DNA of 64,000 bases. Origin: Cyanophora paradoxa CCMP329. Its lineage: Eukaryota > Plantae > Glaucophyta. The position numbers and the translations under genes were made by a program. The notes under the pieces are model-generated. The model saw only the letters and a list, made by a program, of their open reading frames with translations. It searched no databases and was not told where the DNA came from. How positions within the stretch are numbered: position 1 is the stretch's first letter; the number at the start of each line of letters is the position of its first letter. The stretch spans positions 18,651-82,650 of the forward strand of contig QPMI01000536.1 of the NCBI GenBank assembly GCA_004431415.1, given 5' to 3'. This document shows positions 16,502-44,770 of this stretch, one piece after another.

Positions 16502-16532
16502 TCGGACCCCCCTCCCCCCTGCCCCCTCCCCC

Positions 16533-16724: not shown

Positions 16725-16872
16725 TGCTTGATGTGTTCCCCTTATAGTATAGTTGAGATTTCTTTTTAAATAGGGGTCGCGGGGTTTATTCTCATTGAGC
16801 GCTGCGAATTGTCCACAATATAAACATTTAAAGATTATTTTCGTACCTAGATATAAGTACAACCCCCCAACC

Positions 16873-19968: not shown

Positions 19969-19979
19969 TCCCAATATAG

Positions 19980-21347: not shown

Positions 21348-21354
21348 AGTAGAG

Positions 21355-21672
21355 AGGAGGATATGGGGATGGGGGATGGGGGATGGGAAACCCATCCCCT
21401 TGTACTCGAATAGAAAATTTCAAAAAACAAAAACAAAATTATTTTTCTGAGAAAAATCCCATCCCCCTGACTGGCTCCCATCCCCCTCCCATCCCCCTGA
21501 CCAGATATCGTCACAAATCAACCAAATTTCATACATTTTCCCATCCCCCTGCCATCCCCTCTGCCATCCCTCCCATCCCCTGCCATCCCCTCCGCCATCC
21601 ATCCCACCCCCCTGCCATCCCCTCAAACCACCCTTTTTTACCAGACACTCCCATTCCCCTTCCATCCCCCTG
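21355..21672. repeat. GGGATGG / CCATCCC short-repeat tract downstream of the integrase
   Basis: GGGGATGGGGGATGGGGGATGGG followed by more than 10 CCATCCC copies. Confidence 0.8.
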
Positions 21673-21745
21673 ACTATTCAAGATATCTGTTTAAGAGAAA
21701 ACGTAAAGAAATGAAGAGATGGTTGGCAGTCTTAATTATGGATAG

Positions 21746-21838
21746 AGGCAGGAGAGGCAGGAGGGTAATATGTAAAATCCCACACAAGAGGGGATTCCTT
21801 AGGAAAGTTTACAAATAACCCTCCTGCCTCTCCTGCCT
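21746..21838. repeat. Inverted repeat with 21-bp perfect arms, extending ~10 bp imperfectly
   Basis: AGGCAGGAGAGGCAGGAGGGT (21746-21766) and ACCCTCCTGCCTCTCCTGCCT (21818-21838). Confidence 0.9.
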
Positions 21839-21960
21839 AATTGGTGCCGAATCCAAGCTTCTAATACCCCAGAGGCGGCCAACATACTGGTGCCAAAAAG
21901 ACATGATTAATACCCTAAGACCTGAAATAAATGCTTACTACCCTAGTACCTGAAACGCGC

Positions 21961-22035
21961 ACACATAGGGATACCCCTGATCCAAGCCTGTAGGCCGAAG
22001 GCCGGAGGGCTTGGATCAGGGGTATCCCTATGTGT
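21961..22035. repeat. Perfect 28-bp hairpin near the right end of the virus
   Basis: ACACATAGGGATACCCCTGATCCAAGCC / GGCTTGGATCAGGGGTATCCCTATGTGT; the 19-nt loop contains GGCC-GAA-GGCC. Confidence 0.95.
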
Positions 22036-22079
22036 CAAGTTGACTTAAGCTTGGAATCTATGTATCTAGCGACAAGCTG

Positions 22080-22772
22080 CTACTCGGGGCAGGCGGCGTC
22101 GGCGGGGGAGCCGAAGGTGGAGCGGAAGGCGGCGCCGACGGCGGCGACCATGCGCGCGAGCGCCGCGCTCGGCGCCTCCCGCGCCCACCGCCACCGGAAC
22201 TCCTGCACCGCCCGGGCCTGGTCAGAGCCCGGGGGGACGGGCGGGGCGGCGGGGCGGGGTGGCGGGCCTCGACGGCGGCGACAGCGGCCTCTGGGACCCA
22301 GAAGGCGGCCTCGGCGGCGGGGCCGAGGACGGGGCGGTCGCCCGCGATGGCGTCCCGGTGCGCCAGCACGTGCAGGTCCGCGAAGGAGGGCGCCTCCGGC
22401 GGCAGCAGGTACGACGCCCGCCCGAGCCTGCCGCCCGGTCAGCCCGTCGACGTCAGGCCCCGGCCCCACTGAAAAGGAAGGGCGGCCGCGCGCGCACGCC
22501 TCGCGCCGCAGGTTCTTCATCGCCATCTGCAGCTCTGCGGGGGCCTCAGGGGCGTCCCAGCCGCGGGCCTTCAAGCTTCGCCGCTGGGAAGCTTAAGGGG
22601 AGGGGCGGGCGCGCCCTCGGCGAAGTCCCGCGCCTGGCGGAGCTCCTCGCGCAGCCGGTCGCCCTCGCCGGCCGCCCCCGCCAGCCGCGCCTCCGCCTCC
22701 CGCGCCCGCGCCGCCACCCGCTGCATCTCCACCCCGCCCGCCGCCCGCCCCGACCCCTGGCCGCACCCTGTC
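22080..22772 (-). pseudogene. Degenerate duplicate of the 3' part of the host gene at 42966-44770
   Basis: Near-identical to 42966-43915 (LAHRDAIAGDRPVLGPAAEAAFWVPEAAV, VQEFRWRWAREAPSAALARM). It lacks ~270 bp (about 43335-43606) and all 5' exons. Confidence 0.85.
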
Positions 22773-22916
22773 GCACCACTAGAGGTATCTAGATCTAGAG
22801 CCGGAGGGATTCCAACTGTTGATCATGACACGCAAAAGAGAACGTTTCGCCAAGATGCGCTAATCTACGAGCTGCTGTTATCAACTACTTCAATCTGCGT
22901 CTCTAACGCAATCTTC

Positions 22917-25070
22917 TCAAGGTAAGCTTGAAGCCCCTCCACAAGCTTTTGGCAAGCCTCCTCCACCCCATCGTAGCCCTTTTGCATAGTCCAGTTGACG
23001 CTGCGCAATAGCATCATGTACCGTCAATGTTTCAAGTTTATAATTCAAGATTAAGTGATGAAATGACATTAACCTCGTAAGCATCATCTCGTAGTCGGGT
23101 TTGGAGTGCAGCTCGCCGGGTTCACACAAGAACACGGGGAACTTGGTAATGTGATTGTTGTGCGCGAAATACATTTCGTGATCGCAGTCATGGGATTGAA
23201 GGTAGCTCCGGGAAATAAAGCAGATGAATGCTCGGCTCTCCTTTATAGCCACCTACGGTACGCGTAAACGTATATATATATATGGGTTCGCATTCGAAAT
23301 TCATGATGATCATCGAAATATGATAAGAAAAGCGCGAACCGCGCTCCTTTTCAAATCTTTGCGTGCTTCCTCCTCCTCACTGATCCTGTGATCGCAATTG
23401 AAGGTGCCATTGTTGAACTATCAAAGTTCGCAATAGTTTCGAATCGCTTACCAGATTGTAAACCCTTCGGCTATCAACCGTGAAACATACTTCATGACTA
23501 CCTCCTTATTGAATTGTGCGTAGGAGATGAATGCGTCAAACTTTTTCACGCGCGAGGCCACTGGCACAGGGTGCGCGCCCGCCGTGCGCGTTGCACTTCC
23601 TCCGACTCGCTTTGAATTCTCAGGTGGTCCCTGAGCTGTATCTCCGGAAGCCGCCTTCAGATTAGAATTCGAAATCTGGCGGCCGCGGGAATTCTCGTTA
23701 TGCCATGATGTATTCGATAGGAACCAAAGCTATAGATATTAATTCCAAAGGACTCACGTTCGCGTTGGAGGGAGGTGCGCCAGTGATGCTGATTCCGGTA
23801 AGGTCGGACTGCGGGTCATGCTTCACCCGCAGCTTCCTACGTCGTCGTCGAACCACTACGAGCACGCCAAGAGCCGCTGCGATGAGCGCACAAGCCCCGC
23901 CGGCAGCTGCCCCCGCTGCTGCTGGAACAAGGCTCGAGCTTGAGGAAGCCGGCGTTCCTCGATCGCCCTCAGCCCCTTGCAATTGAGGAGAGGGCCCCGG
24001 GGCCACTTCCGGGGCCGCTGGGGGCAAAAGCGAGTCAGCTGGGAGCGTACGCTGATAACAAACTCGCAGTCACCGGTCACAGCGGAGACGCCGAGAACGG
24101 GAAACTCCGCCCCGAACGCAGTAGCAAGCTCCCCGCTCGCGTTCTTCGCAAGAAGGACCTTTACTACCCCTGACACTGGTCGGTGGGTGCACAGTAAGTA
24201 TACAGAAAAAAGTATAGATGGGCGATTGCTGGCCATGCGGCACCTGATGTTGAACTAATGTTCTCGGCCGGGGAAATCAGCAGCAGGTCCAGAACCGTAC
24301 TCCCTCTGTCGTAGTTTGAGAAGATGCATGAACGAGCGCCTCGCTAAATCAAAACAGAGAAGAAAGCACTCACCGAGACACCCGTTGAACTTGAATGCGA
24401 CTTCTGGGCCACTTGAAAAGAGCGGCAAACGCATCGAGGAAGCGCGATTCAATTTCAGCATTCCATTTCGAGTAATCGAAGTCCAGCCTAATAGTCACCA
24501 AGGCGCTCTGGCAGAGAGTCGTATTCAGATACGTATATACGAGATCGAAATCGATATCCGTGGGCGAAACTGCGGACCGAATCCAATGGTGTGGGCGCAG
24601 GGGTTGATGCAGGCCTCGGGCTCTCTGAAACAGAAGGAGAGGGTACCGGTGTCGTCGACGTGGGGATCGGGAGCAGGATATTGGGGATCGGGCTGGGGCT
24701 GGGGCTTAACAGAAAGATGCTGGGGCTTGAGAGAGAACTTGGCGACGGGCTCGGGCTCGGTGTAAAGGAGGCGCGCTCGGGTGGGCTCGGGCTCGGGCTT
24801 GGCGACGGGCTCGGGTTAAGCGACAAGCTGGGGCTTGGCGACGGGCTGGGGCTGGGCGACGGGCTGGGGTTGATCGACGGGCTCGGGCTAGGGCTTGGGG
24901 TGGGGCTGGGCGACGGGCTGGGGCTGGGGGAAGGGCTCGGGCTGGGCGACGGGCTGGGGCTGGGCGATGGGCTCGGGCTGGGCGACGGGCTGGGGCTGGG
25001 CGATGGGCTCGGGCTCGAGCTTGGGGAGGGGCTGGGCGACGGGCTGGGGCTGGGTGACGGGCTGGGGCTG

Positions 25071-25105
<35 letters not shown>

Positions 25106-28100
25106 TGGGCTCGGGCTTGGGCTCGGGCTTGGGCTCGGGCTTGGGGTGGGGCTGGGCGACGGGCTTGGGGTGGGGCTGGGCGACGGGCTCGGGCTGGGGC
25201 TGGGGCTGGGGCTGGGGCTCGGCGTTGGCGATGGAGTCGGGACTGGAGCAGTCCACAGACGAATGCTTCCATCCGGATCTGACGCGGATGACAGAAACCA
25301 GCTGCCGTTGGGCGCAAATGCCAACGCGTTTATCTTGGCGGTGTGCCAATGCAGAGTGGAGCGCAAAGCGTTTGTTTCATCATTCAAAGCAGCGTTCCAG
25401 ATTTTGATTGTACCGAAGTCATCGCCGGAAACGAGGAATGTCGAGCTTGGAGAGAATGCGACACGCACCACGCGTCCCGCGTGGCCCGAGAGGATGCGAG
25501 CAGGATCCATAGAGCCTAGAGCCGCGCTGGAGAAAAGCCAGACGGTCTTGTCTTCTAAAGCCAGAGCTATGAGCGATCCGTCCGCCGACCATGCAATGTC
25601 GTTGACAGCCGCCATCGTCGCAATCTCTGTGCCTTGGATCAGGGACCCTGAAGAAGGATCGTAAAATCTGTGCGTATGCAAATATTCAGATATAGATTGC
25701 GTATGCAAATATTCAGATATAGATTGCAAATGCTCATAATTACGCACGATACGAGATTTTGATTTGCAACAGCGAGCTTATTTCCAGAAGGAGAGAACAT
25801 TATGCGCGAAAAGATAGCCTCGTTCGCGTTGATGAAAGTATGCTGCTCTCCTGATATTGTTGACCAGACCCTGAACAAAATTAAAACCACATTACGCGAG
25901 ATCGCAAGCTTATGATCGTATCTGTGATTATGATCTTGAGCGGCCGCGGGAGTGCATGCGCATGCCCACCTGATTCCGTCGGACGCAAACGTAGCCAGTT
26001 TAAGGGAATCCCGAGACCACGCCACACCCTGAATAGTTGAAAGATGGCCAGACATTGACAGAAGCACAGCCCCAGTTGAGAAATCAAGCAGTCGAACGGT
26101 TTTGTCTAAACACCCCAGCGCAAGCTCAAGCTTGGAGAGATCGGGTGAGAAGGCTGCTGCTGTGAACGAATACGGAAAATTCGTCTTTCTCGACAAAGCA
26201 GATCCTCCAGACAATGCAGACATGACCCGAACTGAGCTGTCACCATCCGCAGAATAAATCGACTCGCCATCCGCAGACACTGCGATGTCCGATATTGAAC
26301 CGAGGTGGCCGGTAAAGGTGGCCAGAGGCCATCCTTGCTGAGGGCCTGCAAAGCATCCGTTAATTGAATACAAGTGAACGGCTCATATACATCGATATCC
26401 GAACGCACAATCAGACCAGTCGGAGACAGCCCAAATGCGCATCGTTCCTCCATGTTCGCTTGACATCGAAACGAGGAATCTCCCATCGCTAGAGAATGAA
26501 AGTGACGTCACGTGGCCAATGGGATTGGATAAAGAATCGGAGAAAGTGGCGATGCGGAGTCCTGTAGTCATGTTCCAGAGGCGAATTGAGGGAACTGTGC
26601 TCGTGCCATCGGGGGCTTGGCCCAACTCGTCTCCAGATGCAACGATGTCTCCAAACCGAGTCGAAACCGTCGCAAGAGAGAAGATCGCACGCGCATGGCC
26701 AGTCTGGAAGCAGCGAATATTCGCCCAGTCAGAGGTTCCCCACACGCAAATTCGAGGGTTGGTTTCCGAGCCTCCCGTGACCATGTATTGACCTCCACTT
26801 GAGAAAGCGATAGCCATGACACTGGCTCCCGCTTCGTGCCCGACTCCACTCGCTGAACCCACCTCAATTGGATTCAAACTGACGCTGGGGTTGAATAGCC
26901 TACACGCATTACAATTGTCAGCGTCGCGCTATAGCTAGTTTTAATTATAGCGCTGGACGCGTGCGTGCGAATTATCTCACCAAACTGAGCGCGAGCCCCA
27001 CCAAGAAAAGGCCATGTAATGGCCGTCAGGGGTAAATCGCAGCGCCGTGAATCGAGGTCTTGTTTCTGTCGTCATAATAGAGAGTGTCCATGTTGACTCT
27101 CCGTTCGTAAAGTTCCAGAGCCTGCAAAGCGGCCAATTCGGATGCGGAACGAATTCGAATCTGTTATAGTTTGATTCAAATGTGCGTACGAACCGAATCT
27201 GCTTCAGACTACCCCCTAAGAGAGCGGCAATCTTGGATCCATCCTTCGAAATGGAGATGGGACCTTCCTCGAGCTGATAGATTGGAACTGAATCGATCAT
27301 GAATTGCCGGACCTCCTCTCCTGTTACGACAGACACCACTCTTATGAACTTCGACGAAGCTGTCCTATTTCGATAATCACGGCATTGAATGATCATGAGT
27401 CGCAGTGTAAAATGACATGTTTGAAATCACTTTGTGCACCTGTAGGCAATGAATGACCCGTCCTCCGAGAAAACGATCGGGAAAAGGCTAGGCCCCGGCA
27501 GTGATGCCAAACCGGGGTCGTCGCTTGTGGACACGGGAACCGGACTCGAGAATTTGATGTCACGCACACGCGCGAAAGGAGCGGTGCTGTGGAGATAAAG
27601 CCACGTCGCAACAAGCGATCCGCCCGGGCTTATTGCTGCCTGCAGCCCCATGTTGCTGGCGTTGTACAGCAAGCGTCCGAAGTGCATGAGACCAGACAAA
27701 GAGCTCAAGGATGCACGCGCGGGTTGCGACCATAGCGCGGCGCAGGGAGATTGTCCGAACGCTCTGCTCACGGCAAGGGCCGGAGAAAGCAACCAGATCT
27801 GCGTCTCGCCAAGGAAGTGCCCGTAATCATCGTAGTAGTACCCGGTCGATAAAATCCTCTGCTGGCCTTCAGATTCGTAGAGAGAAGTCACGCCAGGATT
27901 CACGTTCGAGGCGTGTGCCTCGACTGACGCCACTTGCGTTCTTGATGCGATGCTCCAGGCGCGGATGAAGCGATCACAAATCAGGACACGTGGCCTATCA
28001 GGGCTAAGCGGATCGCAGCCCCCACCAGTGATGATCATCTGAGCGTCTGGAGTCACTGCGACTTGCAACACGAGTCCCGGTGACGCAATGCTGACGGAGG

Positions 28101-29163
28101 TCCAGTCCGTAGTATTCCAGATGCGCAGGGTTCGGTCAAAGCTGCCAGAGACGAGGAAGCTCCCATCGCTGGCAAATGAAAATCCCCAGATAGCGTCTGT
28201 GTGTCCAGCCAGAACTCTTGACTGAGGACTGGAGAGAACTGATGTCCAAATTCTGATAATGCTCATAATCACGATCGAATGAAATCACGTGCACCGTTGC
28301 AGACCGCTTCACACACCTGACTCGGTAAGATATTCCTTCTAGGTGAGAAGACGCCAAAAATGTGCCATCGGGCGAAAATAACAGGCGGTAGGCTTCAACA
28401 TGATTAGATATTAGCGCTGGTCCAGCGAAGGTAGAGGTGAGATCCCATCCAGCCGCACTCGCGGTCCAGATGCTGTATTTACCGCAAAAATGCAAGTTAG
28501 AAAAAATAAGGTCATAATCAAAATTGAGCAAGCTGCAGCTGCTGCTGGATGCACGCACCGAATGGTGCCATCAGACCAAAGGACCGCCATGAGAACACCG
28601 CTCGATGACGCAGTAGCTGTCACGACATATACATACTGACCAGTGTTGGGAGCTTGCAGTATTACTGAAGAATCGAACTCCACAATTCCGTCTGAAGCTC
28701 GAATTCGATATACCCGCACGATCTCGCGGGTTTCAAGTTGATTTCCGGATACGGACGTGACTAGGAATGCCAGGCGTGTGTCCAGGCTAAACTGTGACGG
28801 CGATACAAAGAAAGCCTCTCCAAAATCATATGGATTTGTATCAATATTTAACTCCGATGGTAGGTCCAACATTTTCCGCAAGCTCACAGCGGAGAACAGC
28901 GCGCTTCCACGGACGAAAAACCTTCCGTCGCGACTGACCGGAACGCCACGGCCAACGTGTGCCACGGTTGTATTCAGGGCCTCGGGATCAGGAGCCGTGA
29001 TTCGAGATATGCTTGCTGCGCAATAACATCAACGGGATAGTGATCATGAAGCGCAAAAATGCGTTCAAACGTTAACGGGCGCGTTCATAGAGAGCTCGCC
29101 TGCTATACAGCTGCTTATGAAGACTGAGAGGCAGATGATCGAGTACGTATACATGCGGTGCAT
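22917..29163 (-). CDS. Multi-exon single-pass receptor 1: signal peptide - multiple WD40 repeats - (SP)n stalk - SEA-like - TM - TIR
   Basis: Signal-like [20 protein letters not shown]40s such as [31 protein letters not shown] and [33 protein letters not shown] tract ~24690-25240, then VSR|[24 protein letters not shown] followed by RRRRRK. Spliced TIR: [10 protein letters not shown]...GFTIW...[30 protein letters not shown]...FPVFL. Confidence 0.85.
25671..25733. repeat. 27-bp tandem repeat (~2.3 copies), probably intronic
   Basis: TGCGTATGCAAATATTCAGATATAGAT twice plus a partial copy. Confidence 0.8.
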
Positions 29164-32100
29164 GCGCCGGCGCAGGCTGCAGTTCCCATGGCCAGTTGCA
29201 ACAGAAACGACTCTCCTATAGCTAGGCCTGCAGCTGCCGCTCTTCAGATTCTCCATCCCTAGCTGATCTGGACTCGCTCACTGCAGTCCCGGCACCAAAC
29301 GTACTACGGTACGCTAGGCCTACACTCACGATCACTTTGCAGCGCTATGCATATGAGCTCATGCGAACACGCATGCAGCAGCCGCTGCTGCGCATGCAGC
29401 TGATCCCATGCATAATTATAATCATATGCATATGCATAAGCCGCGCCGCCGTGTACGTATATACATAATCTCGGGACGGCGTAAACAAGCTGATTTACGG
29501 GACGGACGTACGCTTGAAGGTCCCGCTGATTCGAAGTACGTATACGTATATCGTTTGTCCACGGTAGTGCACGTGCTAATACGGTGCCATAGCTAGCCGT
29601 CGGACTCCGAGCTCGAGGCTCGAACTCACTGCAGCTGCATGATCCTGCATCATCCTGCATGCAGCTGCCAGTGCCTGGCACTGCCTGCCAGTGCTGCCGC
29701 GGTGCTGCCACTCACTGCAGCTGAGTCAGCGGCCGCGCGCGCGCGCGTTTTCACTGACTCGCACAGACTCCCACAGTCTAGTTAGTCACTCAAGCCTGTA
29801 GGCTGTACCGGTAGGCTGGAGCTAGGCCTATATATACTGACTCAAGCCTGTAGGCTGTAGGCTGTAGGCGGTAAGGCTATACCGGTACGGTGACTACTAC
29901 GGTCCGGTAGTGGAAACTGACTCAGTGTCATGACTCACTCAGTGATAATCGGATGTCCGATGATCGATCGTAATTATATAGTGCGGAACTGCAAGCTTAA
30001 GGACGGCTGGAATTGCCGTGGTGTAAAATTGCCGCTTTCGCCCTACTACAGATATAGTGACGAAAATATGGTTCGACAGAATCATATTTTCGTCAGCCCG
30101 CCATAGACGGGTCAGCCGTTAGTACCCCTCTCCATACAAAATTTCAGATCGAGAGATCAAAGTGCAGGTCTGACGAATATAGACGAAATAAAGACGCTGT
30201 CGACGTCGACGTCGAAGATTCCCGGAGTCCCACGTTTACAGTAAGGACTACCAGTACAGTACTAGTGGCACTGGCGGCAGTACTGGTCCAGTACTACTAG
30301 TACCGGTACCGGTAGGCTGCGGTAGCCTGCCAGGCTGGTAGCTGCGGAGCCTGCGGCAGGCTGCACTGCCGCTGCAGGCTGCAGCGCGCAGCTGCAGCCT
30401 GCAGCCTGCAGGCTGCAGGCTGCAACGGTGCCTGGTGCCACCGTGCCAGCGGCAGACGCCGGCGTCGACGTCTAGGGGCGTGGACCGGGTCGGGGGGTCG
30501 GCCCGATCGACCCGACCCGCTCGCCCGGCCGACCCGACCGGGTCGACCCGGGTCGGCCCAGGGGGGGTACTTCGATCCCGCTCTCGACCGAAAGAACACC
30601 GCAAACGTGATGAATTACATCGAAAACGAGCTCCAATGCAGCAGATAAATTATAAAGATGCAATATTTGCAATATCTAGATGCATTATGCGCTCCGGAAA
30701 CGAACTTCTGCTGTTTCGGGGGGGTACGTATATTCCATCAAGCAGCCACGTCCACAGTACATGTACATCTGCATGCATCTAGATCTGTGCGACATATAAG
30801 TGTAATACACATTGTATGTGTTATATAGACGAAGATCTCAGCATTTATTAACACTTCGGCAAGGTGGAGAACGGTCCCCAAGGGTGTACCCAATTGCAAG
30901 ACCCTCCGGCCCGGGTCGACCCGGTTCGGGCCCGGATCGGGTCTGACCCGGGTCGGGAGGTCGGCCCGATCGACCCGCTCGCCTGGCCATGGCCGACCCG
31001 ACCGGGTCGACCCGGGTCGGCCCGGCCCGGTCCACGGTCCTATCGACGACGTCACGCCGCCGGCAGTGCATGCGGCGGTGCGCAGCCGCCGGGCCGGGCG
31101 CCGGCCCGGGGCTGCAGGCCCTGCTGAGGCTGCAGGCTGCAGCCCGCGGCAGGCTGCAGGCTGCGCGGCCGCGCGCAGGCTGCAGCCTGGCAGGCTGCAG
31201 CCTGCAGCCCGGCCGGCGGCTGCAGCCTGCGCGCGCTAAGCTCGTTCAGTGTAATGTTAATTATAATGCATTTTGTAATTTATATATAAATTGTTTTTCG
31301 TGATCATGATTCATGCATGCATGATCATGAATCACCAAATACGATTGAAATTAAATGCGCATGCGTACGGATTAATATGTACCCGGTAATAACTCTACTA
31401 ATGAGCCCACTTATGTTTTAATATTAACGAAAATTTCAAGGGCTTGACTCACTACTGGAGTCACGGACCAATTAAGAATCGGTTCAAGATTCCAAGAATA
31501 GCGCCCATGATTGGCGCATGAATGCAGCATGAATTTGCATGAATGCAGTTGTTGATTGGCACAAGAATCCAGTATGAATTACAAATCACTGACTTGACTC
31601 TGCGAGCTGGACAGCCTGGACTCTACTGTAATTCGGGTAATATTTAAGACCCCAAAATAATTAGTAATCCCGGGGTTTGGTCGGTTTAGTAGGCTGAAAA
31701 TAATTAAGAGTTGGCCGCGCGGACCGCTTTAGTAGCGGCCTTTAGAAGGGGGTGGGCGCGGCGCGCGCTAGGGGTCTAGATCTGTTGGAGCGTCCGAGCG
31801 CCCCCTCGCACTTCAGCTAGCTTCTCCCGCGCTGCAACTACGGCTGCGCTACGTACCCCCCCGCACCTCAGGTTTAGTATACGATAAAACTTTAGTAGTC
31901 GCGCGCCTTAAAACTTTGGTACGTATACTATAAAGATCCAGTATACTAATTGGCAACTTAAAATGCCAATTGGCAGTGTAACTGCCATGCCGTGATGCAG
32001 TGGCACTGCGGCACTTGCCAAGTTGGCTGGGCAGCCTGGGGCCTGGGCGCGGCCTTGCTGCCAAGTTGCTGGCAGAGCCTGCATGCAGCTGGCACTCAGT

Positions 32101-34198
32101 GACTGCCTGGCAGTGCTGGCACTGCTGGCAGAGGCTGCCCCAGTACACGCGCGCGCGGCCCTGCATGCGCCGCTAGCGCTGGCACCGCTGCTGAGGCTGC
32201 GCCCGGCGGGCCGGCGGCGGCCGCCGCGGGCCGGGGCCGGCCGCGGCCTCAGGGCCTGGCCATGGCCAGCTAATGGCAGCTATAGCCGCTGAGCTAGTGG
32301 GCGGCTGTGGCCCGCCGCCCCGGCCCGCCCGTGGGCCCTGCAGCTGCCACTAGCCTGCCAGGCTGGCCGGCCCGGGGGCCCGGCCGCCCGGGGGCCGGGA
32401 CTAGGGCTGGGTCCAGTGAAACCAGTGGAGGGTCGAGGGTCCCACTGCACTGACTCAGTGGAGATTTTGGCTCACTCGCACAAAGAAAATTGTATGGGAC
32501 CAGTGAGCCGGACCTCAGCCAGCGCTGCGTGGGGGGGGTATCCGGCGCCAAAAATTAGGACCCATCCGCCACCTAGCAATTTAGGTGGAACATCGTGGGG
32601 GTACTTACTAAAGTTAACGTCGGAGTGCCGCAGGCCGCGGCGCGAAGGGTGTGCACGTGCAGCGTCGAGAAGCACTGCAATTCTGACAATGCCTGCGTTG
32701 CAAATGACCTCTAAACATATCGAAAGCCCGTGGAAACAGTTCAGGCACGTAGTGCCTTGAAGCTCAGCGAGATTTAGGTCGTTTTTGGTCGTTTTTCGTG
32801 TAAAAGAACACGTACCCCCCACTCACTGGTAGTCACTGAGTGAGTTTGACGCAAAAAGCCCACTGACTGAGTGGACCCGTGGGCTCCACTGAACCCAGCC
32901 CTAGCCGGGACTCGGCACTGACTCGGCACTGAGTCGGCAGGCCCCTGCCAGTCTGCAGGGCCAGTGCAGGGCACTGCAGTCTGCAGGCCCATTTCCCTTA
33001 AAAAATACCGCGGCCCGCGGCCCGCGGGCACTTGCCAGGCTTGATCATCGGATTAACTTAGCAACGCGGTGCCAAATTAACGCGCCACTGGCAAACTCCC
33101 GGAGTCCGGTCGACGTCTCCGCGGCTCACCGCGTTAATTTGGTACCGCGTTAATACTCTGCTCAGCGCTGCTTATAATTATACCGCGTTTGGTTGGTTCA
33201 TACCGACGATGATATGATACCGTACCCCCACGATTGCCGCCCCATTTTGTGCCCAGTAATTTAGTGCCCTACGAGTCTACGACGGGCCTACGAGTCGGAG
33301 GCTACGACGGCCCTACGTATACATGTACGTACTACGTATACAGTACTACGGAGTCTCAGTCTACGGTAGGCTACCGTGGTCCGTGGACCGTGGTACTGCG
33401 GCGCCGGCGACGTCGACGCACTGCGGCACTGCCGCTGCAGTGCAGACTGTGCAGTGGCACTGTGGCAGGCACTGGCAGGCTGTGGGCCTGTGGCAGCTGC
33501 GCAGTGCCGCAGTGCGGCTACCGTACTACTTGTAACCGTAGTACTGCGGGGCGGCAGACGCCGGCAGTGCGGCCCTGTGCGGGGCCACTGCGGGCCGGCC
33601 GCCGGGCCAGTCTTCAACTTCTGGCAAGGCTTCGGCTGCACAGTGACTCGTCAGTGAGTCAGTGACTCTCAGGAGTCTCAGCTGCAGAGTCTCAGTGCAG
33701 CTGCACTGCGCGCGCGGCAGTGCGGCCGCTGAGCGGTTTGCATGCTCATAATGCTCTCAACTTTGGCGACTCGAGAGTTTCTCTCTTAGTTGATTTTAAG
33801 CCGCTAAAGCTACCGGTAGACTGGCGGTAGACTGCCGGTAGTACATCAATTTAGGCTACAGCAACATGCGTATGGCAGCTTGCAATTGCAGTTGCTGAGG
33901 AAAGAACGATCATCGGATCGTCAGTATATACTTATCACGGCAGCAGCTCCGGATCTGAGCTCCTCAGCTTAAGCGTAGCGCTAGCCTAGCTATATTACTA
34001 GTAGGCATCATGCTATAGCTATATGCTTTGCGTCATCATGGCATACTATGATAGATCTAGAATCGCAAGTCGTCAGTGGCTGATCAGAGCGCGCTTCGAT
34101 TCTTGAACAGCTGATCATCAAATATATATGCACTATAGCTAGCGCTAGCTATAGCACTGTGCTCGCTAATCGTACAACATCTTGCATGATCAGGCAAG

Positions 34199-37100
34199 AT
34201 GTCGTTTGCAGCTGCAGCTCGACTATGTGCGCAAGCGCAGCTCATGTACATGTTTGTAGCCCTCGCTGTGCTCATGCATATGCATATCGATGTAGCGTCA
34301 GCTGCAGCGCTCGGCCGCGGACGACGTCTTGGTACGTACATCTAAGTCTAGATTTAAATTTATACGCTTTCATCATGTGCATATACATATACATATGATT
34401 ATAATAAGCTTGTACATGTGCTCATTTCTTCATTGCGATCCATGTTATGAAGCTTCCGGCGCCGGCGCGGAGTCGGACTCCGGATCCTGGCCGACATCAA
34501 TGCATCTGGACCCTGAAGACGAAAGCAAGCTTGTGTTGCTGTCGGGGCTGGAAGAGGAAGCGTTCCTGGGCGTTTTCCCATCGGTCAACGGGTCCGGCAT
34601 GTACCTTGTGTATTGGGGTTACGAAGAAGTGTCGAGCTCGTACGGATATCAGCGCGTAGGAAGGATTAAAATCTCGTACCTTCCTATCGGGAACACTACC
34701 CTTGACGAAAGTCTCACCACCGCCGTCGACACGTTCTCGATACTGCCTTCTCGAGTCCACGTCGCTTCCGAGCCCTCACTCGCCGTCCACTACTACTTTC
34801 CAACCAGCTACGTAGTCGACGTCTTTGCTTCAGCAGTTCCAGGATCCGATGTCACCCCCACACGGTTTGGATGCCACGTCGACAACCTGCCCAGCATGAC
34901 CGTCCCGACGCCGCTTGGCTTCCCTATCCACTCCCTCTCCCCTCGAAGCGCCTCGTTTCTCGCCCTCTCGGTGCGCGCGGTAGCGCTAGCTCCCTATAGC
35001 TAGATCTGCTGGCATGCATAAGAAAGCTTCCGGCAAGGACTAGTACTCATGATCATGATCGTGACGTGCAGGGCGACTCGTCAAGTGAAGCGAAGCTGTA
35101 CTACGTCGCGATGCGCGGAACACAGGCCAGCACATGCACAACTACACTGCTTGCAACCACGCAAATCTTGGCTGCAGACGCCATGACAATGCTAGCGACG
35201 CGCCGTTCCATGGATGGCGCCGCTCTCGTCGCGCTTGTGCACAGGGCAGGGGTGTCGCTTTTCAGCTGCTCTTTCTACAGGTCGGCATTCAGCGCTGGGG
35301 AGCAGGATCTCTCTGGTGACCTCGACCAGCCCGCTTGCGTGCAGAGCGCAACCCTCGCATTCTCGGACAATTTTCTGGCTGGTTCGAGCCCAGTGCTGGC
35401 TGCGCTGTCGGCGAGCCGCTCGTTCTTGTTGGTGCTGTTGAGCAAAGAAGGCTCTTCAACTGGACTTGCAGTTAAAGTTCACTTTGACATCAATGGGCGG
35501 TACCTGGCAATCGGAGGGAACTCTTCAGTGCCTAAACCAGTCGGTCGAAAAATACTGGTACACCCCAATGGTCTGGACATGTATGCTTTCGTTGCCATGA
35601 GTGATGGCACTCTTGGTATTGCGCGACTTTCTCAAGGTAACGGATCGGCCCCAAGCTTCGCCGAAGCGTTCAGCCTACAGTGCGATTACAGCCCGGGATG
35701 GCCCGAAGCACAGATGTTGTCGGGACAATGTGCCCCAAAAGGCGCCGCAGCATCCGCAGATGGTCGGTTCGGTTATTTTCATGTCTACCACGCGAGCGCA
35801 TCATATTCAGCCTTCAACACTCGTATCTACATCGTTCGTCTTGCGGGCCCCCCGGTCATGGCGACTTCTCAGTTCCAGGCTGCAATCTCGGATTCCGCAT
35901 CAATCTTTGCAACTCTATCCGGAACCAGCCCGTACGAGCAAGGAGCACTACCGCTCTGCCAGTCAGCTCCTCTGCCCATCCCACAAGGCTGGTCTCTGCT
36001 ATCGGGGTAAGCAATTGCAAGTTCGATTGTATTTGCATGATCATGAATTAGAACCTCGATCTGCATGCGCGCTGAAACAGAAAACGTGCGCATGATTTTG
36101 AAGTCCACTGCACATGCTGCTATCAGACGCATTGTCATACGCGCTCAACTTCGGTTACGGAAACCAATGGCAACCTCGAGCAAATTGGAGCACCGCATAC
36201 CTCGCGCAGGGCAACCTTTCGAGACAAGCAGGTGTTTACCCCGCTGAGCTCAGCTATCAGAACAATGAGAACTATTTCGGCCTGTTATCGGAGAGCGTCG
36301 CGGACGGTGTGTCTGTCTACCGTCCTATCGATTGTGATCGAGCACCTGCGCAAATCGCGGTAATGCAAACCACCGCCCGAGGCACGTCCCTTTCGCTCCA
36401 ATAAATAGAGCTAACTAGATAATTACATTATGCCTGAGCAAACCAACGTTAACCGCGCAGTTCCAGTGATGGCGGGCCTGCAAACACTCCAGTCGAGCTT
36501 GCTTACATTCTCTCAGACCGATGAGAGTATTCTCCGTAACCCACCTCATGTGTTCCCTCTACCTGACGATGACGGAGTCTCATTCAACATTCGATTCGGC
36601 ATGAAAGATGTAAATGACGGAATATATGTGTGCATCGAGGTGTGGCGACGGTCAACTCAGATCGGATCTTGCGTTCAAGTGTCAAACAACTTCTACGACA
36701 CCTCCTCTTCCTTGTCCTTCCGAATTCTCTCAGCCACGACAGGTCTGAACGGAAAGTGCATCTACATTCTGTTTACAAACTCCACTGGTATCAGCTTCTT
36801 CAGCAACCAACCCCGTTCGGAGCCTTTTCCGCCTTCGTTGATTGTCGTGTCTAAGCGTGCTCTCATTGAAGCCGCGAATACTGGAATGGAATCGCTGCTC
36901 CAAAATTCAAGTGCCTGTGCACAATTCCAAATTGAAATTGGCTTTGTAACGGAATCCAGGTGCGCCCTATTGCTATTATTACCGACAAATATCGGTGAGA
37001 TCTCACGTGCTTGCAGCTTGTCGCCAAGGATTGCGACTGGGTTTCAATCAGACAGCCCTGGTTCATACAAGCTGCCCCTCAGACCAGCGCCTGTGCAGGA

Positions 37101-40100
37101 CTTCATATCACGTGATGGCTCGCGAGCTGCAGTGCTGGCTCTTACTTCGAACGAAGGCCTCTCGGCCTGGTACGTCACGCAAGTCGTTGTCACGCCGGGC
37201 GCAACACCCATCGCCTCCCTTGTTGGATCTCCTACGAACATAGATTTTTGGCCCGCACTGGGAAGCTCTTATGCCACCCGCCATCTTGCGTTGATGGACA
37301 GCGCAACGCAATCTTGGGCAATATATTTCATTGCAATGGACCCGTACGATCGATCGGATAACGGACCTGCTCCGTCGACTGGCTTTGTGATTCTTCGATG
37401 CCGCGTCGACAGCTTCGGCTTTTTTTATTCAAAGGCCTTCGATTATTCGAATTCAGTAGAAATTTCTCCCGGCGGGGAACCAATATCGAGTTCATCGCTC
37501 CCACAGCCCAGCGAGAGCTCGCAATCCGCCCTGCGGGCGTGGGACGCGACGGGGTTCTTGCGGCCGATGAGGATCGTCTCGGACCCAGCGCGCTCCGTCG
37601 TATACTTCCTCTACGCATGGCGTCCCAACGCTCTGCTTCTCGGAGTCAGTCCGTACGGCTCCACTATCTGGGTATACACTTGACTTTCTTATTTACGAAT
37701 CGACTACCTTCTCGATCTTTGACTTCCTTATTTGCGGCAGTCCATTTCGAGCTCGAATTTCGAAGCTTTCTCCGTAAAACACCAGTGGCATCTCCCTACC
37801 TGTGCATTATACGACTTCTATCCATTCAAGAGCTTGCCCATGGGCTTCGCGCAGTGCAGTAGCTACATTGCGAAAGTAGACCTCAGCTCCGACGGCTACT
37901 TCACCAGTTCCTCAGCTCTGATGGGCGAGAATCTCATGCGAATTGACATGAGGGCGCCCCTCACGCCAACCGACCGGCTGATCGCCCCCCCTGCGGAAGA
38001 CGCCGTTTATGTTTTTGCTGGGGAAGTGGACGAGGCGCTCTTCCCGGACGGATATTTGTCCATGACCGACTCTTCGTGTTCTGCCCAGTTCGTGCCGACG
38101 AGCACAATGTACCTTGCAAGAATCTCACCGCTCGCTCTCTCTGTGACCGGCCTTGCTCTCCTACCCCAAGCGGCTTTCGGATTTCACTCTATGATTGACT
38201 GGTCTTCATATTCCTATGGAGCGCCGTGCTACGAACTCAAGCTCCAGTTTTCGCATGCCGGGGTCTACCCGCAAGACCTTGCCGTGGCCCCCGATGGCTT
38301 GGCGCTGACGTTCAGCGCATTCGACAACCGGCGCGGCTCCTCGCACCTCCCCACAGCAGTCATGTACCGCATCGAAGTGCCAGCAGCAGCGTACGTGGAG
38401 ACGGACGTGTTCTTTCTGGCGGCGATCGACGGCGTGCCACCCGACGAAACGGCGGTCGGATGCCAGCACGTCACGCGGGCGGTTCCAGACGGATGGCTCC
38501 TTGCAGAAGGGTGCGTCTAGATAATTCTCCCCACGTCATTCGACTTTCGCCCTAACTCCGGCTTCAGGAATCAATTCATCAGAGCTGCTGCTGCATCGAG
38601 AGGCTGGGGCGCAGAGGCTGTCATACTTGCAGGTGTGCAAATTATATGTATACGTATCATAGCTCATAGCTAGTTTACTAAATATATAGCAAATGCATTT
38701 AGCGATAGCTCTAGATCTAGATCTGACTTTCAGCCATGGCCACACGCAGATGGAACCGCGGTACGAACGCTTCTCGCGACCACATCGAATTCAGGCGTGT
38801 CCTGGACGGCAACGTCAACAGACCATCTCGTCTCATCGACAGGCAGCGATGGCGTCGTCCGGTACCTGCCTCGGCTGTGCCCCGCACGCGTTCTAGTGTA
38901 CAAGATGAAGCCGGGCGCGTCGTTCCCGACTCCGAGCCCGAGCCCGTCGCCCAGCCCGAGTCCGTCGTCCACCCCGAGCCCATCACCCAGCCCCAGCCCC
39001 AGCCCGTCACCCAGTCCCAGCCCCAGCCCCAGCCCCAGCCCCAGCCCCAGCCCCAGCGCTAGCCCGTCGCCTAGCCCCAGCCCGTCGCCCAGCCCCAGCC
39101 CTTCGCCCAGCCCCAGCCTGTACATGTCACCCAGCCCAAGCCCGAGCCCATCGCCCTGCCCGAGCCCGACCCCGTCGCCCAGCCCGAGCACGCCGCCCAG
39201 CCCGAGCCCGAGCCCGAGCCCGTCGCTCATTCCGGGCTCCTCGCCAAGTCCGAGCCCCTCGCCAGCAGCTCAGCCACAGGCGCAGGACGGAGAAGGGACG
39301 CTGGCTTTTACACCAACCCCCTCACTGAGCCCACCAGCAAGCGCAACTCCGTCCCCGCGGCCGTCGCCCACGGCGCTCGCTCTGGGTCCGGACCCGTCAC
39401 CCACGGCCCTCGCGATCGTAAGTACTATTACTGCTTTACACCCAAGGTTAACGTTGCTGTTTTTGCACAGGCTGCAAATTCAGACCCCAGCGCGCCTACG
39501 CCATCTCCCAGCGCGAGCGCTGGCGCTACCGCTTTTAAGAATGCAACGCCATCGCCGAGCCCGACATCAATATTGGCATGGAAGATCACGCCGACACCGT
39601 TTTCTGGGGCTTCGACAGGATCGAGCTCATCTGCGGGTATCCCCCCCCCCCCCCCCCCTCTCCGTCATCATCGTCATCAGGAGTCCGAATAAAGAACTCG
39701 AATCGAATTCGCAGGAACAACCGGCCTTCAAGCCACTCCGACGCGTAGCCCTTCGGTTGCAATGTTGACCGCTCTTAACATCACGGTGGTCTTGAACTAC
39801 GATTTTGCTGCGTGGAGCACGGCCGTCGAAAAGGAGTTCCTGTCGCGGTTTGCTGCCGTTCTCGGCATCGCCGTGGAACGCGTTATCGTCGTTCGTGTCT
39901 ACAGGTCATTGAAGTCGCCCGCTGCCGCGTCTATATCGCCCGTGAACTCAAAGACTCTGCAGGGGAAGCACAGTCTTGGAGCTAGCAGTCATCGCCGACG
40001 TCGACTCCGCATCAAACAGCACTGGTGCGCTTGCGCGAATCGAAAGTCGCGATCGATCGTTTCAAACAAAGCTTGCAATTGTGATTGATTAATTAAGTTC

Positions 40101-41782
40101 TATTTCTTGTCGCAGGTGCCCTTGCCGCCTCGCTGGCCCAAAAGGAGGCAAGCGGAGCACTTGCAAGCGCCTTGGGGACTGAATTCGCATTGCAGTCGCT
40201 GACGATAGGTTAGCCCCTTCAAACGCCCACTCGCTCTTCTATTCGGTTTAATTTAATGCGAGACAACGTTGACGCAGTCAATGATGTTAGAACATCAACT
40301 TCGACCGACACGTCTGCAGCTGGCGCAACCCTGGCCAGCGCCAGCGGCGGCGCAACAAACTCGGCCAGCGGAGGCGGTTCGGGAGCTTCAATGATTCCCA
40401 TTGCCGCTGGCGCGGCCGGAGGGGCGGCCCTGCTGGCCGCCGGCGTCGCGGCGGCTCTGGTGATCCGGAAGCGGCGCGCACGGAATTCGAAGGGCTCGTC
40501 CAAGATCGTCCCGGATGTTCCGGATCCGGACCAATATTCGGATGTGCATGTGCATGCTCAGGCGCTCGCTTTTCTTTTATTCCGCATCCGAAATCTTCGT
40601 AAAATCTTCTGTTTTAGTCCGCATCTGAAAGTTTCGCATGCAGAGTTCCGGAGCCAATCGAGACCAATCGTGGAAAGTTCACGAGATCGAAGTCGTGGAT
40701 AGCGACGCCTCAATGAGAGTTGTCAGGATTCCCGAGCCATCAGCAGCATCCCTGCAGCTCGTTAGCGGTAACGAAAGGGAGGTTAACACCACAGTGCATC
40801 TGCGCCCGCCGGTGCACATCAATCCAGGTCGAATCCACTTCCAAATTTATAATAATGCATCATTCTGTCAGGTACCGGCGACTCATGATCAATCTAATGC
40901 AGTGCAAGCACCAAAGCATTCGCCTCTCAAATCCAAGCTGATTTCACCGGTACCTTCGTCGATAGCCAACCGCCAAGAGATGCGATACGACGCGTTTATC
41001 TCGTGCGCATACTTGTTCACTTTCTTCAATTAACTTCAAATGCAATTTCAGAATTTGACCGAATCCTCGCGCGCCAGTTACGCTCACAAGAATTCAGAGC
41101 TCGTAACATTCTACACGAGAAAGCTTGAAGAATCCGGAGTCTGCACGATCTGGTGAACTCGATCTTGCAATTGCAGCTCAAGATCATTTGCTGACACGGG
41201 TCTCGGATCTCAGGGTGGACTTGGAGCTGAAGGCGGGACAGAAATGGATGAATGAAATTGCGGTCTGTTATATAAGCAGCTACATTTACAGGTCGTTGAA
41301 GCGAACTTATCCACGAGCAGGCTGCTATGCGCCGCAGCAAGCTTTTCATTTGTTTCCTGTCCTTCGAGTACCTTGCTTCACATAACTGCGACGACGAGAT
41401 GCAGGTGATTTCAAATATATATCATTAATAGTAATGACTGTATACGTATTTGTTTCTCGTGTTTTAAACTGGCGCTTCACCATCCAGTACGCACACAATC
41501 GCCTCCGCCTGAGGAAATTTCCGGTTTGCTTGGTCGACCGAGAAGAAATCGTGCGAAGATTTGAAGAATTCAACAGAAAGAATTACGACATGATGCTCGC
41601 CTCTGTGCCAGAGTGCGCATGCGCCTTTAAAATCTGCGTCATTCTGTATCAAGCATCCGTCTGACGTCGTCTGCAGAGAGGACTGGACACAGCACCCGGG
41701 GCCAGCCGAGGTGCAGATGGAGGAAACAGCAAACGAGCTCATTCTCAAGCTTAAGCGAGCCATAGCTGTAGAGAGAGTCTAG
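34199..41782 (+). CDS. Multi-exon single-pass receptor 2: signal peptide - large beta-rich ectodomain - (SP)n stalk - SEA-like - TM - TIR
   Basis: Exon 1 MSFAAAARLCAQAQLMYMFVALAVLMHMHIDVASA. Long exons at about 34453-34970, 35072-36005, 36470-37670 and 37741-38510. SP tract ~38925-39270, then VYR|GSTVLELAV. TM IPIAAGAAGGAALLAAGVAAALVI followed by RKRR. Spliced TIR: YDAFISYAHKN...CTIWVDLELKAGQKWMNEIAAAMRRSKLFICFLSFEYLASHNCDDEMQYAH...FPVCL. Confidence 0.85.
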
Positions 41783-42965
41783 ATATGAGGGTTTGTTTCC
41801 ATTGCGATCTGATTATGAGTCACATCAAATTAAAGGCTCTGCAAAGTGACGAAAACGGTGTAAACTTGAAACGCACTAATATTAATGCCGACGCGGCGGC
41901 ACTCAAGATCTGCGCTGCGCGTGCGATATATAGCACCGCCTCGCTTTAAAACTTTCACCTCCTCCAGCTGCCGTCGACTGTCGCGATCGTAAAATAATCG
42001 ACGTCGACGTCTCTGATCATGAACTCGTAAATTTAAATAAAAAAATATAAATCAAAGGTGCTACGGTACTCGGTGCCGCCGCCGCGCCCCCTCGCCCGCC
42101 ACGTCCGCCGCCGCCCTTCGGGACGCCGTGGAAGAGTGCGGCTTCCATGGCCAATCCGCGGGCATTACGTCGCCCCCTCGAGCTCGCCCCGACCTCGCCC
42201 CCTCGCCCCGACCTCGCCTCCGTCCCCCCGGCCTGCTCCGGCTTCATGACCGGGGCCATCAGCCGGGGCCTATAGCTACGTATATACTCCTGCAGCTGCG
42301 CACTTAAAGGAGTGCGCAATCTCACTAATTATAATTATAAGGACCGGAGGGATGGGAGGGGCATGCGCAATCTCACAAATATAATTATATTATATGCAAA
42401 GAGGATGAGGATAGATATCGGACGCCGCCGGCGCCGCCGCGCCGCACGCGGCTGCCCACCGCGCTCGAGCTCCAAATTCGAGGAGGACTTCAACTTCTAC
42501 ATCTATAGCTATAGCTAGCTCTACTGCCGCAGTGCTTCGATTTCACAGCACTAGTACTAGTATACCGTATATACGTATACGTATTACGTACTGCATGCGC
42601 AGCTACAGGAGCGCAGCAAAGAGCCGTCGATGTCCGGCGGTCGCAAATGTCCGCTTCCCCTTAAGCTTGTCGCCCCGGCTCCTTCAGCGCTAACTTGCAA
42701 ATGTTGCGCTTCAAGAGAAGCGCCTCGAATCCGATGATCGATTCATGTCAATGAAGTGACTTGAAATCTCGTGACAAACTGCAATACTATATATAGCTAT
42801 GATATGCATGCGCAATACTATGATAGCTACTCTGGGCTTGATCCCGGCCTCGCCCCGGCCCGTGTACCGTCTAGATCTTGTCCCGGCCCGGGCGGCTAGT
42901 CATCGTGCCTTGAAGCTTTTTGAAGCCTGATAGCTAGCTATAGCTATAGCTATAGGGGCGAGCCG

Positions 42966-44770
42966 CTACTCCGGGCAGGCGGCGTCGGCGGCGGCGCCGA
43001 AGGTGGAGCGGAAGGCGGCGCCGACGGCGGCGACCATGCGCGCGAGGGCCGCGCTCGGCGCCTCCCGCGCCCACCGCCACCGGAACTCCTGCACCGCCCG
43101 GGCCTGGTCAGAGCCCAAGGGGCGGGCGGGGCGGCGGGCGGGGTGGCGGGCCTCGACGGCGGCGACGGCGGCCTCGGGGACCCAGAAGGCGGCCTCGGCG
43201 GCGGGGCCGAGGACGGGGCGGTCGCCCGCGATGGCGTCCCGGTGCGCCAGCACGTGCAGGTCCGCGAAGGAGGGCGCCTCGGCCGGCAGCAGGTACGACG
43301 CCCGCCCGAACCTCCCATCCCGCCAGGTCAGCCCGCGCCGCCCCGGGCGCCTCGGACCCCGAGCCGCGCACCGGATCGCGCGGGCGAACTGGCGGTACTC
43401 GGCGGTGGACTGCAGCAGCGCCACCAGCCGCGCGTTGTCGTGCTGCGCGTTCGTGAGAGGGCCGGTGGGAGCAGGGGCCACGGCCACGGGCGGGCGCGCC
43501 TCGAGCTGGTTGACGTGCTGGAGGAGGGCCGTCGTCGCCCGCGCCGCCTTCCGCAGCTCCCCCGCCTCCGCCTCCCGCGCCGCCACCTGCCCCCCGCCCC
43601 GGGACCTCAGGCCCCGGCCCCGCGCAGGACGAGGGGCGCCCGATCGCGAGGCGCGCGCGCGCGCGCCTCCCGCCGCAGGTCCGTCACGGCCGCCTGCAGC
43701 TCTGCGGCGGCCTCAGGGGCGGCCTGGGCTGTTCGGGGAAGGGGAGGGGCGGGGCGCGCCCTCGGCGAAGTCCCGCGCCTGGCGGAGCTCCTCGCGAAGC
43801 CGGTCGCCCTCGCCGGCGGCCCCGCCAGCCGCGCCTCGGCCTCCCGCGCCCGCGCCGCCACCCGCTGCATCTCCACCCCGCCCGCCGCCCGCCCCGCCCC
43901 CTGGCCCCGCCCCGTCAAACGACTACCCCCCGCCGAGAGGGGGCGGGGTACAGACGTCGTGCTCGGCGACGGTGGCGACGAAGGACCGCTCCGCCGGCGA
44001 CAGGTTCGCGTGCATCTGAGGCGGGGAGGGGGGGTGAGGGTTCCGGGGGTACGTGCGCGGACGGGGGTACGGGGCGCCCTCGCCTTGTTGTCGCGGGAGG
44101 AGAGCTCGCGCATGCCTGCTTCGAGGTCGCGGCACTTCGCCTGCAGCTTGTCCACGAACTCCAGTTGCTGGGGGGGCCTCAGCGAGGGGGTACAGGTGCG
44201 GGGGAGGGGGGTACGAGGCAGGCACCGAGGAGAGGGACTCGACGCGCTTCTCGAGGGCGGCCTTCTGGCGCGCCTGTTCCTGCGTCTCGAGCCAGAGCTT
44301 GCGCTCCACCCAGACCCCGCCCGCCCCGCACGAGACGCCCCCCGCGCTCGCCACCCGCGCCGTCGCCGACGCCGCCGCCCCGGGGCCCGCCGTCCGCCGC
44401 GCCGACGCCGAGACCGGTCTGCGCTCAAAGATCAGAGGCCTCTCGATCCGCTCGCGGCGGCGGGCGGTCGCCTGTTCGTGCCGCGCTCCCTCATGCGCGA
44501 GGGCGATCCCGGCGCCGCCGCCTCGTCCGGGTCACCGAGGTACCTGCGAAGGCGCGGGGCGGATCGAGAGGCTCAGAGCCGCTTTCCAAGCAGAAGCGAG
44601 TCCCGGCCGCGCACCTCGGCATCACGTTTCGGACGCCCTGGTCGAGGATGTGCTGCGCGAAGCGCCTCGACGTCAGATCGAGCTTGCCCGGCGGGCGCGC
44701 CCCGGCCCGGCGCCCGAGCAGCCGAGCGAGGATCGAGACCTCTAGGGGCGAGAAACGCACGACCAACCCT
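42966..44770 (-). CDS. Multi-exon host coiled-coil protein of unknown function
   Basis: Exons with WVERKLWLETQEQARQKAALEKRVESLSS, QLEFVDKLQAKCRDLEAGMRELS and DNARLVALLQSTAEYRQFARAIR, separated by short GC-rich introns. 5' end uncertain. Confidence 0.55.

Follow-up and report, generated by a model that had tools for sequence, protein, structure and literature searches.

Receptors that join an ectodomain, one transmembrane (TM) helix and a TIR domain are known from animals and choanoflagellates, and land plants have intracellular TIR proteins together with kinase-coupled surface receptors. A 64,000-nucleotide stretch of the genome of the glaucophyte Cyanophora paradoxa CCMP329 (contig QPMI01000536.1, positions 18,651 to 82,650; hereafter the window) raises the question of whether this layout also occurs in a single-celled alga: a first-pass annotation had read here two divergent genes for Toll-like-receptor analogues without leucine-rich repeats (LRRs). 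Judged from its sequence, the predicted receptor pair is real, apparently intact and undescribed in the searchable literature.

Two divergent genes for predicted single-pass TIR receptors

The two genes were modelled from a six-frame reading and lists of splice sites, with exon joins predicted. Each database, profile or folding query was one exon or part of one, and joined translations were used for frame checks and for alignment against proteins already retrieved. The start codons lie 5,035 bp apart, in line with the spacing of about 5 kb first proposed, and both genes splice to single stop-free frames:

22865..29163, minus strand: gene 1, 18 exons, 1,672 aa, predicted type I membrane protein
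34199..41782, plus strand: gene 2, 20 exons, 2,020-2,036 aa, predicted type I membrane protein
29100..29163, minus strand: gene 1 exon 1, signal-peptide-like start (hydropathy peak; ATG at 29163 or 29154)
34199..34331, plus strand: gene 2 exon 1, start resembling a signal peptide, with an RRL motif after it (hydropathy of the predicted exon)

From the N terminus, gene 1 encodes a signal-like start, a WD40 ectodomain, a Ser/Pro (SP) stalk, a module with a GSTV motif, a TM helix and a TIR domain; gene 2 has the same order with a beta-rich ectodomain that matches no family. Stalk, GSTV module, TM helix and TIR, the plan described in the first-pass annotation, are present in both genes, and the signal peptides that complete it are predicted, from the hydropathy of the predicted first exon only. 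Hydrophobic first exons fit the frame in both genes and non-hydrophobic ones are possible too; in gene 1, an upstream in-frame ATG at 29256 would lengthen the protein by 31 aa. The left end had been placed at 22917, which is a stop in another frame; gene 1 ends at 22865. We consider the architecture of both genes, as modelled, very probable.

The introns measure 53-127 bp, have 44% GC and mostly follow the pattern GTGC/GTGA...CAG. Splice sites are GT-AG apart from one probable AG/GC donor per gene (gene 1 intron 1, donor 29099; gene 2 intron 4, donor 36382), and frame-keeping GT alternatives are available for both introns. Gene finders may overlook GC-AG introns in such an AG/GC context. Gene 2 was 2,020 aa as first built and is 2,036 aa with the better donor of intron 4. 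A frameshift at this intron, where the most convincing GT donor (36360) does not keep the phase, was rejected, in-frame donors being available at 36382 (giving a 79-bp intron) and at several GT sites. Further, the long exons of both genes were comparably open in only 0-2 of 2,000 shuffles.

A common inner half under unrelated ectodomains

The C-terminal halves of the two proteins are paralogous, with 40% identity between the TIRs (E = 6e-25) and 39% between the GSTV modules (E = 3e-15). The three common intron positions named in the first-pass annotation were right, and in all five are identical in place and phase; a sixth is near, within alignment uncertainty. The parts between ectodomain and TIR are as follows:

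24578..25240, minus strand: gene 1 Ser/Pro stalk, 220 aa with 74 SP dipeptides, in the same exon as the last WD40 blades
38921..39770, plus strand: gene 2 Ser/Pro/Thr stalk, about 250 aa with 51 SP dipeptides and two introns
24074..24507, minus strand: gene 1 SEA-like juxtamembrane module with R-GSTV, three exons
39777..40208, plus strand: gene 2 SEA-like module with R-GSTV, three exons
23833..23907, minus strand: gene 1 TM helix and basic stop-transfer RRRRRK
40394..40477, plus strand: gene 2 TM helix and basic stop-transfer RKRR

The single TM helix followed by basic residues fits a type I orientation in each gene. A hydrophobic strand in the gene 2 GSTV module also scores 1.84, but it belongs to the module held in common with gene 1. 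Linkers of 76 aa (gene 1) and 120 aa (gene 2) separate TM helix and TIR. Above the TM helix stands a cleavage-type motif of the form G-S-V/T-V, which is GSTV in both genes and GSVIV in P0014, a distant Cyanophora paralog introduced below. At the level of this motif and its position above the membrane, the module may be read as SEA-like.

The ectodomains gave no alignment better than E = 1.5 between the two genes, as expected from the first-pass annotation, which had described them as different:

25241..29015, minus strand: gene 1 WD40 ectodomain, about 1,050 aa, exons 2-10 (Pfam WD40, PDB matches, local hidden Markov model (HMM))
34453..38920, plus strand: gene 2 ectodomain, about 1,300 aa, beta-rich, 20 Cys, no family match

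In the ectodomain exons scanned, profile searches found neither an LRR nor an immunoglobulin (Ig) match, so the proposed Toll-like layout without LRRs stands. In gene 1, the WD40 repeats claimed earlier were recovered by Pfam above its cut-off in four separate exons, and a local profile HMM marked about 12 clear and several degenerate blades, with room for about three propellers. The best PDB matches were Nostoc 2YMU and PkwA, repetitive bacterial-type WD40 proteins, whose scores are summed over repeats and so are no proof of origin. One exon (25667-24578, minus strand) holds both the last WD40 blades and the (SP)n stalk, and this fusion is free of any splice assumption because both lie within one exon. 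Seven of the nine ectodomain introns are in phase 2, most of them inside the Arg preceding a blade-ending Trp/Phe strand. Introns 2-9 (25748-28558), mostly in phase 2 at blade ends, yield symmetric exon modules reminiscent of the repeat exons of Ectocarpus.

The gene 2 ectodomain had no homolog among 5.8 billion proteins in a length-limited search and no Pfam match, PDB sequence match or metagenome locus; an Atlas search returned leads of at most 0.90 with a low recognition score. A single-sequence model of exon 5 was of low confidence (predicted local distance difference test (pLDDT) 38), and its fold matches were almost all propeller-containing chains, all weak (best E 1e-3; best Z 6.1). Residues ~410-605 and ~1150-1335 (35650-36333 and 38160-38890), one of six pairs tried, aligned weakly (z 5.8, 0 of 200 shuffles; E = 0.17 by hhalign), and both segments have a same-phase intron after a common Cys..Pro-x-Gly-Trp motif, a weak sign of an old internal duplication. 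Our best guess, not a result, is that this ectodomain may be a degenerate, once-duplicated propeller region.

Paralogous inner halves combined with non-aligning ectodomains imply, as the most likely origin of the pair, an old duplication followed by replacement of one ectodomain or both. The earlier description of the ectodomains as swappable sensors holds for one ancient swap between genes that are 40% identical, and not for active shuffling.

The TIR domains belong to a Cyanophora subfamily

The predicted intracellular ends of the two proteins comprise:

22890..23540, minus strand: gene 1 TIR, four exons, catalytic-position Glu codon at 23177-23175 (Pfam TIR_2, alignment)
23340..23385, minus strand: gene 1 BB-loop exon, without the Asp and Gly of the subfamily
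40986..41779, plus strand: gene 2 TIR, six exons, canonical BB loop, catalytic-position Glu codon at 41396-41398 (Pfam TIR_2, alignment)

Single exons of both genes match Pfam TIR_2 (gene 1, E = 2e-5; gene 2, E = 0.005), under the Pfam cut-off because the exons are fragments of the domain; together with the WD40 matches of gene 1, this bore out the TIR_2 and WD40 parts of the profile check that had been suggested for the pair. Among 1.84 billion representatives searched, 11 of the 13 proteins matching the gene 1 TIR exon are EukProt models of C. paradoxa. Their architectures are TIR-TIR-beta-helix, SAM-TIR, LRR-SAM-TIR, beta-helix-SAM-TIR, TIR-only and one TM-TIR gene (P0007/P0014). By similarity, the TIRs of both genes are therefore assigned to a lineage-specific Cyanophora subfamily that is also used in cytosolic proteins. 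Because the closest TIRs come from Cyanophora proteins that are built differently, the best reading is that these receptors were put together independently of animal Toll-like receptors (TLRs), as the first-pass annotation had supposed.

P0014 (tig00020693 g13027) is a third stalk-GSV-TM-TIR gene, with a GSVIV module, a TM helix and a TIR. The annotated P0007/P0014 model starts in the Ser/Pro stalk read in the wrong frame, and the P0014 ectodomain was probably missed upstream by an annotation cut off at its start. Longer kin of the subfamily amounted to two distant bacterial-type TIRs in region searches, and a metagenome scan was blank, both limited by length and word matches.

The nearest solved TIRs in the PDB are those of TLR15, Cat1, 7UXR, Toll-receptor-related 2 and TLR1/6; SARM1 was not among the matches. 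The Glu of helix alpha-C is kept in both genes and absent in two of the three N-terminal TIRs of the tandem-TIR relatives. Gene 2 has the BB-loop motif of the subfamily (Trp-x-Asp...Gly); in gene 1 an acidic run takes its place, and both Asp and Gly are missing. Mis-splicing of this loop was excluded: the motif stayed absent under all 65 in-frame splice options. In addition, the His that is conserved behind the first strand is replaced in the gene 1 TIR, whose branch is the longest among single TIRs. In one tree the TIRs of genes 1 and 2 are weak sisters (81/77), and in the other their relationship is not resolved.

We also considered whether the gene 1 TIR and the degenerate first TIR found in tandem-TIR proteins are of one subtype, as if a fused unit had been split, and dropped the idea as unsupported. 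The first TIRs of the tandem proteins cluster without gene 1 (98/96 and 92/97 in two trees), and forcing gene 1 together with them was not rejected (approximately unbiased test, p-AU 0.21). The first TIRs of the tandem proteins P0001, P0002 and P0009, with a remodelled BB loop in each and no Glu in two of three, form a group of their own. P0009 and P0003 have consecutive gene numbers and look like one split gene.

A proposed mode of action and the points against it

If the predicted signal peptides and the basic residues after the helix are taken at face value, ectodomain, stalk and GSTV module would lie outside the cell and the TIR inside. A stiff Ser/Pro stalk would keep the large propeller-type head off the membrane, where it might bind a multivalent surface, such as a microbe, a virus particle or another cell. 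Binding would cluster the receptors, and the SEA-like module might assist by being cleaved or pulled apart. The TIRs, on their flexible linkers of 76 and 120 aa, could then self-associate, and cytosolic TIR proteins from their own Cyanophora subfamily would probably join the assembly. The gene 2 TIR, with its Glu and intact BB loop, is a candidate enzyme that would cleave NAD+ or make a nucleotide signal, and the gene 1 TIR, with its remodelled loop, may be a weak or non-enzymatic scaffold or modulator. In evolutionary terms, a Cyanophora-specific TIR would have been grafted onto a stalk-SEA-like-TM chassis, and duplication with ectodomain replacement would have given both genes.

We regard signalling by TIR clustering as reasonably probable, the single-pass receptor model as a whole as moderately so, and a role in defence rather than general sensing as evenly balanced; NADase activity of the gene 2 TIR falls slightly short of an even chance, and action of genes 1 and 2 as one unit is doubtful. 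The full scenario, in which a Toll-like surface immune system with exchangeable propeller heads on a cleavable stalk, a TIR NADase that these switch on directly and an active/regulatory heteromer was built independently in a glaucophyte, appears improbable.

Several observations weigh against this model. WD40 repeats are usually cytosolic in eukaryotes, which is why the predicted signal peptide of gene 1 matters. The identification of the module as SEA, made in the first-pass annotation, agrees with the GSTV motif and the position above the TM helix and drew no profile or fold match: the SEA profile had no match at E<=10 in the six exon pieces (short, 20-44 aa) or in the 151-aa P0014 module. 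A model of the P0014 module (pLDDT 44) showed alternating strands and helices, and the fold matches listed for it (best Z 4.7) included no SEA chain. This module aligned weakly with that of gene 1 (z 3.0) and not with that of gene 2, and an Atlas search for the SEA-like module yielded nothing beyond leads of 0.80, which point to uncharacterised algal clusters. With regard to catalysis, the same Glu is found in the TIRs of TLR1, TLR6 and TLR15, which signal as scaffolds, and is therefore no proof of it. Furthermore, many active TIRs have a Trp before the Cys, where this subfamily has Asn or Asp. NAD+ hydrolysis is not shown by all TIRs (PMC9153377). Finally, the transcripts that were expected to confirm the gene structures did not appear in the RNA contigs compared. 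Gene 1 had at most 5% of its sequence words in any presumed RNA run, and the SP repeat (about 9% of the gene 1 stretch) could supply those words from other genes. The GSTV-TM-TIR part of gene 2 (39250-41950, selected so as to exclude the long repeat) had no contig in four presumed RNA runs from four studies. These data are assembled contigs without a positive control, in which rare transcripts are lost, so that absence does not equal silence.

Alternative explanations

The probabilities given to the alternatives overlap and do not sum to one. The strongest holds that the pair are general environmental or adhesion/mechanical sensors, in which mucin-like stalk and SEA-like module would register contact or shear, with the TIR as a widely attached output module. 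The presence of the same TIR subfamily on unrelated cytosolic proteins would suit this, as would the lack of any sign of rapid sensor shuffling between genes 1 and 2. Unrelated ectodomains on one chassis, a lineage-specific expansion and silence in standard cultures would, in contrast, be typical of recognition families, and characterised TIR proteins act mostly in defence or cell death (PMC9153377). We hold this alternative to be somewhat unlikely.

Less likely still is an obligate sensor/executor pair like RRS1/RPS4, a co-expressed heterodimer in which gene 1 would sense and restrain gene 2 until ligand arrives. The head-to-head layout, the unequal TIRs (one BB loop altered, one intact) and their weak sisterhood (81/77) point in this direction. 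The space between the genes, however, contains at least two inserts that resemble miniature inverted-repeat transposable elements (MITEs):

29164..34198: spacer of 5,035 bp between the two start codons
30473-31042 and 32401-32904: MITE-like elements with 22-23-nt terminal inverted repeats

The regions upstream of gene 1 and gene 2 have no DNA in common, and with the inserts this leaves no sign of co-regulation in the spacer. Moreover, each gene has its own large ectodomain, so that neither is a bare executor, and an old local inverted duplication accounts for the layout without partnership. The spacer also contains palindromic low-complexity DNA and a possible third MITE-like element (32592-33234).

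That one or both genes are silent relics starting to decay in a repeat- and virus-rich region, with the gene 1 BB loop altered by drift, seems improbable. In favour are the lack of transcripts among the RNA contigs, a GC content at third codon positions (GC3) of just 0.60-0.62 against 0.75 GC in the right flank, a Polinton-like virus ending 800 bp from the gene 1 stop and the long branch of the gene 1 TIR. On the other hand, neither a stop nor a frameshift interrupts the 11 kb of coding sequence and all 36 introns are usable, in genes that are only 40% identical; the genes are not depleted in CpG (observed/expected about 1, against 0.49 in the adjoining virus), and contig-based RNA data lose rare transcripts. 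Over-joined models, with ectodomain exons and TM-TIR exons in separate transcripts, would fit joins that are predicted only and annotated relatives (P0007/P0014) that begin at the stalk, but are very improbable given gaps that are all 53-127 bp with canonical ends, compatible phase and no room for promoters, WD40 and stalk in one exon, and a P0014 annotation that looks truncated, its start reading as out-of-frame stalk.

Surroundings of the pair

A direct repeat stands on both sides of the pair (22067-22781 and 42953-43925; 94% over 385 bp and 84% over 296 bp). Its open reading frames (ORFs) have no Pfam match, and it could allow the whole 20-kb block to vary in copy number or be lost. To the left lies an endogenous Polinton-like virus (4232-22066; 43% GC) that encodes an A32 ATPase, an rve integrase, an endonuclease VII within a 1,057-aa ORF and an F5/8 domain protein; no terminal inverted repeat was found between the two stretches compared. 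Immediately beyond the left end of the virus, positions 3700-4130 contain short stretches resembling exons of a host gene, which the virus possibly interrupts. Further out is a GC-rich tandem repeat array (619-2077) with a period of about 140 bp and long open frames in several phases. The GC-rich ORFs to the right of the pair have no Pfam match.

Comparison with known receptors and significance

In layout, the Cyanophora pair resembles the TLRs of animals and choanoflagellates, which likewise have a signal peptide (predicted here), a large ectodomain, one TM helix and a C-terminal TIR, and TLR1/6/15 TIRs are among the best PDB matches. It differs in having a WD40 or beta-rich head in place of LRRs, a Ser/Pro stalk of 220-250 aa, a GSTV module, a long TM-TIR linker and a TIR of the Cyanophora subfamily. 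The LRR-TM-TIR architecture has been reported as unique to choanozoans and Ig-TM-TIR as confined to animals (PMC6040629). The IL-1 receptor family also consists of type I receptors with a TIR and without LRRs, so that TM-TIR under an ectodomain other than LRRs has a precedent; the Cyanophora pair differs in that no Ig domain was detected. By its predicted domains the pair is TLR/IL-1R-like in layout and a member of neither family, having no LRR and no Ig.

Adjoining divergent TIR genes with unequal TIRs recall the paired TIR-type nucleotide-binding LRR receptors of plants (RRS1/RPS4), whereas the Cyanophora proteins are predicted to span the membrane, their genes are separated by 5 kb with inserts and their partnership is conjectural. 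Exon scans of either gene gave no match to an LRR or to an NB-ARC/STAND domain, for which there is no room between TM helix and TIR. Gene 1, with one TM helix and a predicted inner TIR and outer WD40 propeller, can be set beside PkwA-type WD40 membrane sensors and bacterial-type TIR-TM-WD40 receptors, and its repeats score best against Nostoc 2YMU and PkwA. Its order is, however, reversed relative to the TIR-TM-WD40 type, with WD40 N-terminal and a single TIR C-terminal, and it adds a signal-like start, a eukaryotic stalk and a SEA-like module. SEA-domain mucins of the MUC1 type have a comparable Pro/Ser-rich stalk followed by a module with the GS(V/T)V motif, as in MUC1, just above one TM helix; the Cyanophora module differs by its lack of a Pfam SEA match or recovered fold and by its TIR tail. 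The ROCO-LRR and NB-ARC-TPR candidate receptors of Ectocarpus (PMC3341825) are also algal and build repeat sensors from exon modules, and the gene 1 WD40 introns are likewise mostly of one phase. Those receptors are, however, cytosolic and actively shuffled, with one repeat per exon, whereas gene 1 exons hold one to five degenerate blades and recent shuffling is not visible.

A review of TIR proteins lists TM-TIR, LRR/Ig/ankyrin-TIR and TIR-NBD-WD40 classes, with no WD40-ectodomain receptor among them (PMC9153377). Searches for Cyanophora TIRs, SEA with TIR in algae and propeller-TM-TIR receptors returned nothing relevant from a literature that excluded most subscription journals, in line with the first-pass annotation, which knew of no description of this architecture.

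Should a glaucophyte have arrived at this layout with different building blocks, the plant side of the tree would provide a clear example of convergence, and the ectodomain-TM-TIR layout would prove to be independent of LRR or Ig heads. If gene 1 and gene 2 do form a head-to-head heteromer, it would be a membrane-spanning counterpart of the paired nucleotide-binding LRR receptors of plants. The finding bears on the way in which threats are sensed by single-celled algae. Its value would lie mainly in the whole family of this genome, to which the pair adds a WD40-headed member and a natural comparison of an intact with an altered TIR.

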